Of a stretch of 38,081 bases of DNA, positions 32,870-34,835 are shown piece by piece (position 1 is the first letter of the stretch; each line of letters starts with the position of its first letter). The notes under the pieces are model-generated. The model worked only from the letters and a program-made list of their open reading frames with translations. It searched no databases and had not been told where the DNA came from. The stretch is from Octopus sinensis (Eukaryota): contig NW_021835816.1 in the NCBI RefSeq assembly GCF_006345805.1, positions 1-38,081 of the forward strand, read 5' to 3'. The position numbers and the translations under genes are program-made.

Positions 32870-33528
32870 TACATAACTGCTTTTTATACATTTTGATCAA
32901 ATCCCCTGTGAGTTAGCATGGGATCTCCTCACAACAGTGTAAACTGTAATCAAGTTATTCTTGTCCTTAAGAGTAGCTTGAAGTCTACCCCTCGTTTGGT
33001 TCCGCTGAAGTTCCACCAGCTATGAAATGCATGTAGCTTGGATTTTCTTTACACCATTCTTTAATTTTGGGATATACATATATGTATACACATACATACA
33101 CCCACACACACACAAACATATATATATATATATATATCATACACACACATACATCATATATATATTAATATATATATATATATATACACACAAACACATA
33201 TATATATATACACACACATACATACATATTATATATACACACATACATACATATATATATATATACACACATTACATATATATATATTACACACACATAT
33301 ATACACACACACACATATATATATATGTACACACACATACATACATATGTATATATTATATATATATATATATATCGTGACGTATTTTTGCCATTTCAAT
33401 AGGCTAACCCCTAAGGGTGGATGCTACTGTAGTTTTTAGCCCCAGGAGGACACACTCTCCAGCTGGCCATAGACACACTATCTGTGTCCTGTCAGTATTT
33501 GCAAAGGGAAGTCATCCTTCCCGTCTTC

Positions 33529-33595
33529 AACTTATGATACACACGGACTCGAGGTTCGAGGTATTGACCTCTCGTCAGCGGTGACAATCATAGTT
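33529..33595 (-). ncRNA. Type I hammerhead ribozyme, unit 1 (GAAA read as GAAC; 1-nt deletion in stem I)
   Basis: Minus CTGACGA GAGG TCAATA CCTC GAAC C TCGA GTC CGTGTG. Confidence 0.6.
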
Positions 33596-33880
33596 GTCGC
33601 CGAGAATTAGATTTCCTTCACAAATACTTATACTTTTTCCAGCGCCCACTGTCGCTGATATTGAAAAAGTGAAATCAAACAATGATAAATATCAAAGTGA
33701 GTTATATATACTAGTAGCGGTAACACATCGTGACGTATTTTTGCCATTCAATATGGCTAACCCCTAAGGGTGGATGCTACTGTAGTTTTTAGCCCCAGGA
33801 GGACACCATCCTCCAGCTGGCCATAGACACACTATCTGTGTCCTGTCAGTATTGCAAAGGGAAGTCATCCTTCCGTCTTC

Positions 33881-33948
33881 AACTTATGATACACACGGAC
33901 TCGAGTTTCGAGGTATTGACCTCTCGTCAGCGTGTGACAATCATAGTT
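33881..33948 (-). ncRNA. Type I hammerhead ribozyme, unit 2 (intact); predicted GUC cleavage between 33898 and 33897
   Basis: Minus AACT ATGAT TGT CACACG CTGACGA GAGG TCAATA CCTC GAAA C TCGA GTC CGTGTG T ATCAT A AGTT; all core bases present and stems pair. Confidence 0.92.
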
Positions 33949-34235
33949 GTCGCCGAGAATTAGATTTCCTTCACAAATACTTATACTTTTTCCAGCGCCC
34001 ACTGTCGCTGATTTTGAAAAAGTGAAATCAAACAATGATAGATATCAAAGTGAGTTATATACAGTGCGGTAACACATCGTGACGTAGTATTTTTGCCATT
34101 TCAATATGGCTAACCTAAGGGTGGATGTTACTGTAGTTTTTAGCCCCAGGAGGACACACTCCTCCAGCTGGCCATAGGACACACTATCTGTGTACTGTTC
34201 AGTATTTGCAAAGGGAAGTCCATCCTTCCCGTCTC

Positions 34236-34305
34236 AACTTATGATACACAAGGACTCGAAGTTGAGAGGTATTGACCTCTCGTCAGCGTGTTGACAATCA
34301 TAGTT
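34236..34305 (-). ncRNA. Type I hammerhead ribozyme, unit 3 (degenerate GAAA/stem III)
   Basis: CTGACGA GAGG TCAATA CCTC intact; the following bases read TCAACTTCGAGTC. Confidence 0.45.
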
Positions 34306-34596
34306 GTCGCCGAGAATTAGATTCCTTCACAAATACTTATACTTTTTCCAGCGCCCACTGTCGCTGATATTGAAAAAGTGAAATCAAACAATGATAAATA
34401 TCAAAGTGAGTTATATACAGTAGCGTTAAGGTAACAACATCGTGACGTATTTTTGCCATTTCAATCTATGGCTAACCCCTAAGGGGGATGCTACTGTAGT
34501 TTTTAGCCCCAGGAGGACACACTCCTCCAGCTGGCCATAGACACACTATCTGTGTCCTGTCAGTATTTGCAAAGGGAAGTCATCCTTCCCGTCTTC

Positions 34597-34662
34597 ACTT
34601 ATGATACACACGGACTCGAGTTTCGAGGTATTGACCTCTCGTCAGCGTGTGACAATCTAGTT
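34597..34662 (-). ncRNA. Type I hammerhead ribozyme, unit 4 (intact core); predicted cleavage between 34613 and 34612
   Basis: Minus CACACG CTGACGA GAGG TCAATA CCTC GAAA C TCGA GTC CGTGTG. Confidence 0.88.
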
Positions 34663-34835
34663 GTCGCCGAGAATTAGATTTCCTTCACAAATACTTATAC
34701 TTTTTCCAGCGCCCACTGTCGCTGATATTGAAAAAGTGAAATCAAACAATGATAAATATCAAAGTGAGTTATATACAGTAGCGGTAACACATCGTGACGT
34801 ATTTTTGCCATTTCAATATGGCTAACCCCTAAGGT

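Follow-up and report, generated by a model that had tools for sequence, protein, structure and literature searches.

A contig of 38,081 nt from Octopus sinensis (NCBI RefSeq assembly GCF_006345805.1, contig NW_021835816.1, positions 1 to 38,081 of the forward strand, referred to here as the window) contains a short tandem array of a 353-nt non-coding monomer, each unit of which carries a recognisable type I hammerhead ribozyme motif on the minus strand. We put the probability at roughly 80% that this array is a genomic copy of a non-autonomous retrozyme without long terminal repeats (a non-LTR retrozyme) residing in an octopod genome. The hallmarks of metazoan non-LTR retrozymes are short tandem units (150-450 bp) with a canonical type I hammerhead of one polarity, a GC content below 50% and a self-paired monomer, and these elements lack LTRs, primer-binding sites (PBS), polypurine tracts (PPT) and open reading frames (ORFs) (PMC7229834). 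The window contains a tandem repeat of ~350 bp with a type I hammerhead of one polarity and a weak palindromic helix III, a GC content below 50%, a highly self-paired monomer, and no ORF, LTR or adjoining reverse transcriptase (RT) gene. An earlier reading of this DNA (the original prediction) had proposed a candidate non-LTR retrozyme, and every testable published sequence criterion of the class (PMC7229834) was found in the array.

The array was delimited by Tandem Repeats Finder, alignment of the units and blastn searches with the consensus monomer:

33374..34834, minus strand: putative retrozyme array, 353-nt non-coding monomer in 4.1 copies.

The period is 353, with 93% matches and 5% indels between copies, and the boundaries differ by 2 nt at the low-coordinate end from the 33376-34834 first put forward for a 353-bp repeat. 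Searching the consensus against the whole window returned five array segments at 96-99.6% identity, and no further copies or fragments of the monomer outside the array. The consensus has a GC content of 42.8%, and its longest stop-free stretch is 66 codons. No protein relatives were found among 5.8 billion proteins with a composite query covering all six frames, in agreement with the expectation that the monomer contains no ORF.

Read on the minus strand, the hammerhead core begins with CUGACGA once per unit, at forward-strand coordinates 34645, 34286, 33930 and 33578. The predicted cleavage-site nucleotide C17 falls at 34613, 34253, 33898 and 33546, so that the sites are 360, 355 and 352 nt apart, exactly as had been anticipated (352-360 nt). 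Numbered in the order in which they would be transcribed, the four ribozymes are as follows.

34607..34651, minus strand: hammerhead 1 (transcribed earliest) with an intact core, predicted to be cut between 34613 and 34612 (RF00163, 32.2 bits; descriptor match).
34247..34293, minus strand: hammerhead 2, disabled, nominal site between 34253 and 34252 (comparison of units; no Rfam match even at E<=10).
33892..33936, minus strand: hammerhead 3 with an intact core, predicted to be cut between 33898 and 33897 (RF00163, 32.2 bits; descriptor match).
33540..33583, minus strand: hammerhead 4, impaired, nominal site between 33546 and 33545 (Rfam, 16.7 bits, E 1.5).

The intact copies, at 34645 and 33930, both read CACACG-CUGACGA-GAGG(UCAAUA)CCUC-GAAA-C(UCGA)G-UC^CGUGUG, with the caret at the predicted cut. 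These are the copies that the original prediction had called units 2 and 4 and had singled out as the only ones with a full core, and their sequence is the one it gave. The core elements CUGANGA, GAAAY and RUH are exact in both, and each of the 15 core positions is correct, as are the three helices. The topology is that of type I, with an open-ended helix I: stem I is 6 bp long, stem II comprises 4 bp and a 6-nt loop, and stem III consists of an A-U and a C-G pair closed by a UCGA loop. The ribozyme is confined to the minus strand and has the same phase in all four units. The hammerhead that had been claimed for every unit is therefore recognisable as a motif in four of four, but two of the cores are mutated, with UCAA in place of GAAA in copy 34286 and GAAC in copy 33578.

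Covariance model searches recovered both intact copies over the full length of Rfam RF00163 (Hammerhead_1; model positions 1-45) at 32.2 bits, with an E-value of 1e-5 when the region was searched and 2.5e-4 when the whole window was searched with all 4227 families. The curated gathering score of RF00163 is 34 bits, an operational cut-off rather than a biochemical feature, and a default Rfam scan consequently comes back empty; the hammerheads appear with E-value reporting only, where the remaining matches are miRNA artefacts driven by microsatellites. We also used a strict descriptor, in which the CUGANGA/GAAA/UH core and a stem II of 4 bp were mandatory, stem III needed 2 bp or more, and no more than one of the 6 bp of stem I could be missing. 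This descriptor matched the window twice, at the two intact copies, and did not match either strand of any of 300 simulated windows of the same dinucleotide make-up. No other ribozyme signal was found on either strand of the window in the Rfam E-value scan, and the plus strand was empty in the descriptor search as well. A minus-strand string of the form CUGACGA...GAAA at ~6127 was rejected as a hammerhead, since it violates both the GAAAY and the RUH rule and is supported by neither Rfam nor the descriptor, and was judged to be a chance occurrence.

The locus is a partly decayed copy in which two of the four ribozymes are intact. In hammerhead 2 (copy 34286) the change from GAAA to UCAA alters two core positions (G12U and A13C), and this is accompanied by a U insertion in helix III, an A insertion in the 5' strand of stem I and a G2U change in its 3' strand. 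Hammerhead 4 (copy 33578) carries a change of A15.1 to C together with a 1-nt deletion in stem I (CAC-CG). Both G12 and the A15.1-U16.1 pair are essential in hammerhead biochemistry, so hammerheads 2 and 4 should, judging from these changes, be inactive or nearly so. In the two intact copies self-cleavage is predicted after H17, which is C17 at 34613 and 33898.

Compared with the consensus, the array has 10 substitutions and 24 indel events, with three of the indels inside hammerheads. Most differences between units are single-base indels, many of them away from homopolymers. An excess of this kind is unusual for true divergence and may partly be noise from long-read assembly, in which case some of the ribozyme defects, such as the indels in stem I, may not be real; for the core substitutions an artefact is less likely. 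By an informal count, 7 of the 34 differences lie inside the 45-nt hammerhead, which makes up 13% of the unit, and there is no clear enrichment. A spread of differences with no clear focus on the ribozyme fits neutral decay of the locus.

The RNA of the monomer is predicted to be unusually stable in the polarity of the ribozyme, with a folding energy of -122.2 kcal/mol and a z-score of -6.8 (none of 100 dinucleotide shuffles folded as well), or -5.8 in an independent run. The opposite polarity folds less well, at -92.7 to -102.7 kcal/mol with z-scores of -2.4 to -4.1. Folded as a circle, the monomer reaches -117.1 kcal/mol with 63% of its bases paired. Validated reference retrozymes from coral, mussel and axolotl that were treated in the same way gave z-scores of -0.9 to -3.7 and 66-71% paired bases, so by these predictions the stability of the octopus monomer is at least as marked as theirs. 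Stem I of the hammerhead extends beyond its first six pairs into the body of the monomer:

33881..33948, minus strand: extended stem I of hammerhead 3 (sequence, free and constrained folds).

It consists of the 6-bp CACACG/CGUGUG helix, a UGU/U internal loop, AUGAU/AUCAU, a bulged A and AACU/AGUU; this continuation had been described beforehand and is present both in the sequence and in the constrained fold. From there the predicted fold runs on into a long, branched, self-paired body. When the catalytic secondary structure is forced, the fold lies ~6 kcal/mol above the minimum free energy. The UGU/U internal loop, a candidate loop 1, is located six bp from the core, and the 6-nt loop 2 ends in AAUA as in the Rfam consensus, so that the modelled geometry is compatible with a tertiary contact of the two loops. 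Helix III, an A-U and a C-G pair capped by UCGA, creates an 8-nt palindrome, ACUCGAGU, two copies of which form a duplex of -12.1 kcal/mol. Pairing of this type is known to produce double-hammerhead arrangements in newt and in some viroid RNAs.

The two ends of the array adjoin compound microsatellites of the same kind:

33090..33373, no strand: compound (TA)n/(CA)n microsatellite adjoining the low-coordinate side of the array, which is 3' in the RNA sense (Tandem Repeats Finder rows 33090-33375, junction sequence).
34835..34916, no strand: compound (TA)n/(CA)n microsatellite, like the preceding one, adjoining the other end of the array (Tandem Repeats Finder row 34836-34916, junction sequence).

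These two tracts are probably the split halves of a single target into which the array was inserted. TA repeats stand directly at both junctions, and runs of at least five TA units account for just 3.4% of the window. In the RNA sense the array begins at about position 131 of the monomer and stops at about position 174, and its ends are therefore not set by ribozyme cutting. No recognisable target-site duplication was found at the array.

Penelope-like elements (PLEs) are relevant here because they have been proposed as parents or mobilisers of animal retrozymes, which co-occur with them and are related to their pseudo-LTRs (pLTRs) (bioRxiv 10.64898/2026.07.22.740005). The Naiad and Neptune PLEs favour (TA)n targets, a preference that obscures their target-site duplications, and Naiad remnants have been reported in Octopus spp. 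(PMC8557442). The insertion into (TA)n is therefore suggestive of a link between the array and mobilisation by PLEs.

By analogy with the elements of coral, mussel and axolotl, the RNAs of which have been studied by experiment (PMC7229834), the minus strand would be transcribed into a multimeric RNA, which the hammerheads would cleave after GUC. Unit-length RNA could then be closed by a host tRNA ligase of the RtcB type into a circle of ~353 nt, with a predicted junction at which ...CUCGAGUC is joined to CGUGUGUAUC... (...GAGUC to CGUGUG...). The circle would be copied round and round by the RT of an autonomous element, most likely a PLE, and the resulting tandem cDNA would be integrated at a nick, in this case inside the (TA)n microsatellite. 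A nick at such a place would account both for the arbitrary end phases of the array and for the lack of a recognisable target-site duplication. The end phases and the small copy number at the locus fit this cycle; 75% of the retrozyme families in a 2026 survey have no more than seven repeat units, which makes 4.1 copies typical (bioRxiv 10.64898/2026.07.22.740005). Because only ribozymes 1 and 3 are intact, a transcript of this particular array would be expected to yield a dimer of 715 nt (34612 to 33898) in place of monomers. A possible exception is offered by the ACUCGAGU palindrome, which could let neighbouring units form double hammerheads and might in this way restore cutting at the defective sites. 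If there are active master copies, they must be at other loci.

Several observations weigh against the retrozyme interpretation or limit how far it can be taken. RF00163 aligns with the intact copies over its full length, but their score is 1.8 bits under the gathering score. With two of its four ribozymes dead the locus may be silent; no promoter was identified, and a terminator-like U5 tract in the ribozyme polarity of the monomer argues against read-through by RNA polymerase III (Pol III). Within the monomer there is no Pol III B box at up to 2 mismatches, and a single A-box-like string was found at 1 mismatch. A second locus of the 353-nt family, of which a retrozyme would be expected to have many dispersed copies, was found neither in the rest of the window nor in 62 kb of O. 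bimaculoides DNA. JGI metagenomes, IMG/VR and GTDB contained no match to exact 21-mer and degenerate 33-mer hammerhead patterns, and an ORF-based look-up with a six-frame composite query for copies of the monomer in public assemblies or transcriptomes likewise returned nothing. The absence of a second locus is weak negative evidence, since the collections searched hold almost no cephalopod DNA, and mobility of the family is putative. The (TA)n argument is based on one insertion, and the Naiads described from cephalopods are old remnants only and lack canonical hammerheads (PMC8557442).

The array could instead be a local satellite or tandem duplication of an ordinary kind that grew as DNA, through unequal crossing-over or replication slippage in surroundings rich in repeats, with an incidental hammerhead and no RNA-mediated mobility. 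Newt satellite 2 was at first read as such a satellite. The single locus seen in the searches made, the abundance of other tandem repeats and microsatellites in the surroundings, and the divergence of the copies, half of whose ribozymes are dead, would all agree with this history, but we consider it unlikely. A DNA-level satellite has no reason to possess strong, strand-specific RNA structure around a ribozyme. The position of the array, cleanly within a microsatellite and with ends at an arbitrary phase, is as expected of inserted rolling-circle cDNA, and of the tandem repeats in the literature that have canonical type I hammerheads, all those examined proved to be expressed retrozymes (PMC7229834). 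A mere chance resemblance to a hammerhead, arising in a repeat with many hairpins, is effectively refuted: the Rfam score lies just below the gathering threshold and nothing is found at that stringency, but the window-wide E-value of 2.5e-4 over all families, the absence of descriptor matches in 300 simulated windows, the correctness of all 15 core positions and three helices, and an extension of stem I by the monomer exactly as in known retrozymes speak against coincidence.

It is also very unlikely that the units represent the pLTR, or a tandem terminal part, of an autonomous PLE. PLEs do carry tandem type I hammerheads in their pLTRs and insert into microsatellites, and Xenopus retrozymes are related in sequence to pLTRs (bioRxiv 10.64898/2026.07.22.740005). 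However, no RT or GIY-YIG domain was revealed on either side of the array by a Pfam scan of ten stop-free stretches from the 28.3 to 38.0 kb region, which were selected as the most protein-like and are not an exhaustive set. The only RT in the window is of the long interspersed nuclear element (LINE) type, with RVT_1 and zf-RVT, and is 7 kb away, so that, with the flanks covered by those ten stretches, no PLE was found in the window. PLE hammerheads are minimal and lack a helix III loop and loop-loop contacts, whereas in the octopus hammerhead helix III is a complete hairpin, loop 2 has 6 nt and stem I contains an internal loop. The four units of the array are equal and follow one another without intervening sequence. 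A viroid-like or deltavirus-like circular RNA that replicated autonomously and then became endogenised would share the small size, the compact predicted fold and the hammerhead, yet such an origin is scarcely credible. The ribozyme occurs on the minus strand only, while RNAs of the Avsunviroidae type have ribozymes in both polarities, there is no ORF for a protein resembling the delta antigen, and a low-GC head-to-tail DNA array matches retrozymes and not known RNA replicons. As for LTR retrozymes, no LTR structure was found around these uniform tandem units, which adjoin the microsatellite directly, though no search was aimed at a PBS or PPT.

Outside the array, the window contains many other repeats. 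Its sole RT belongs to a broken LINE-type gene at 24465-26463 on the plus strand, split over three ORFs that correspond to RVT_1, the C-terminal part of RVT_1 and zf-RVT. Its closest relative (97% identity) was sequenced from sewage in Bologna, where it lies on a metagenome contig of 2 kb (ERZ22666216) that is presumably animal DNA derived from food. The RT ORF of the window itself had no record in an exact-match look-up. Short stop-free stretches at 29408-29826 on the minus strand resemble the C-terminal part of a LINE protein, with a weak PHD-like cysteine motif (E about 0.006, under the Pfam cut-off), and this is possibly a second degraded non-LTR retrotransposon. The ORFs at 18482-18949 and 31927-32229, both on the minus strand, have in common an N-terminal peptide, MLAW.GRF..G.G.P..., and repeated 'FYVPP.QVP' and 'FLCATDTGAR' motifs that correspond to a 62-bp tandem repeat. 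They probably represent another repeat family, and the single ORF of this type that was scanned had no Pfam match.

Other tandem duplications occur at 4847-5217, 6547-7028, 16080-16489 and 31813-32100, with periods of 184, 252, 223 and 62 bp, respectively, and none has a ribozyme signal. Those of 184 and 223 bp resemble repeats akin to short interspersed nuclear elements (SINEs) that have been duplicated in tandem. Several SINE-like interspersed families of ~200-400 bp are present in both orientations (193-485, 3285-3697, 7553-7949, 8250-8657, 15179-15601, 15859-16489, 17828-18245 and 36754-37177), with further SINE-like repeats at 5100-5266 and 35289-35494. Several of these interspersed repeats are 84-95% identical to a 76-kb Octopus bimaculoides locus (CM046612.1), and a SINE-derived pseudo-ORF is 84% identical to an 'uncharacterized protein' of that species. 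These matches assign the window to an octopod and support the cephalopod host that the original prediction had thought probable. Very long simple repeats, (TCA)~208 at 16791-17415, (AAT)~135 at 23685-24085, (TAT)~184 at 27781-28327 and (TA)~225 at 9249-9694, give rise to artefactual long ORFs and to spurious matches to miRNA families in the Rfam E-value scans.

The class of element is well described, and the locus, an ordinary and partly decayed copy, does not represent a new mechanism; what is new is the sequence family, within a kind of element (the metazoan non-LTR retrozyme) that is already established and already known in molluscs. We found no report of hammerhead repeats or retrozymes from cephalopods in the searchable literature, in which the hammerhead and SINE-like repeat sequence strings had no match either, and the 2026 retrozyme survey included no molluscs (bioRxiv 10.64898/2026.07.22.740005). 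A more ambitious reading is that this is the first described family of cephalopod retrozymes, active from master copies elsewhere and giving rise to abundant circular RNAs of ~353 nt in octopus tissues. We hold this combination to be possible but doubtful. If true, the clean insertion into (TA)n/(CA)n would be site-level evidence for the integration of retrozymes by a (TA)n-preferring PLE GIY-YIG endonuclease, where the retrozyme-PLE link has so far been supported by co-occurrence and pLTR sequence similarity only, and the mobilisation machinery has been inferred and not shown. A (TA)n context shared by copies genome-wide would turn this into a concrete and testable clue linking retrozymes to Penelope-like endonucleases. 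Retrozymes are the main known ribozyme route, as opposed to back-splicing, to small circular RNAs in animal genomes, and a cephalopod family would widen their catalogue to a lineage prized for its unusual RNA biology. The monomer would also provide a compact and very stable natural scaffold (z about -6) for the expression of circular RNA.

Comparison with known systems places the array nearest to other metazoan non-LTR retrozymes. Outside the invariant core, the monomer shares with four validated constructs (PMC7229834 supplement) only chance matches of 9-11 nt and therefore represents a distinct family, in keeping with the species-specific sequences that are the rule among retrozymes (PMC7229834). 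The LTR retrozymes of plants are likewise non-autonomous retroelements that yield hammerhead-processed circular RNAs, but they have type III hammerheads within ~350-bp LTRs, a PBS and PPT, 4-bp target-site duplications, a GC content above 55% and circles of 600-1000 nt, whereas the octopus hammerhead is of type I and its units are uniform tandem repeats without LTR structure. The hammerheads of PLE pLTRs resemble it in type I topology, tandem order and a bias toward microsatellite insertion; they are minimal motifs that flank an ORF for RT and endonuclease, in contrast to the canonical hammerhead of the array with its lack of any ORF. The schistosome Sm-alpha element is similar in being an invertebrate repeat, of ~335 nt, with a type I hammerhead and a stem I internal loop that contacts loop 2, as it may do in the array. 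It differs in that Sm-alpha is described as SINE-like with Pol III promoter boxes, while the octopus monomer has no B box, an A-box-like string with one mismatch, and a U5 tract in the sense orientation.

The hammerhead architecture comes closest to the type seen in mussel and in axolotl Ax353, where a helix III of 2 bp is closed by a tetraloop and forms a palindrome. Newt satellite 2 and the axolotl elements Ax330 and Ax353 have tandem units of ~330-353 bp with a type I hammerhead and a weak palindromic helix III that is able to dimerise, and their RNAs give circular products. They occur in vertebrate hosts at copy numbers above 100,000, and their sequences are unrelated to the array, with GC contents of 0.51-0.57 as opposed to 0.43. 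The 350-390-bp family of Mytilus galloprovincialis (construct Mg353), for which expression and circularity of the RNA, predicted for the array, have been shown, offers the fullest set of likenesses: a mollusc host, a tandem non-coding monomer of ~353 bp, one type I hammerhead of a single polarity per unit, low GC and a highly paired monomer RNA. The palindromic helix III found in the published mussel and axolotl constructs is built in Mg353 as in the array, from an A-U and a C-G pair and a tetraloop, so that both contain an 8-nt palindrome (ACGCGCGU in mussel and ACUCGAGU in the array). The differences lie in stem I and in stem II with its loop 2, which read GUCU/UUUGU/AGAC in mussel and GAGG/UCAAUA/CCUC in octopus. 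Most of the archetypal loop-loop nucleotides are said to be missing from the mussel motifs (PMC7229834), while loop 2 of the array retains the AAUA of the Rfam type I consensus.

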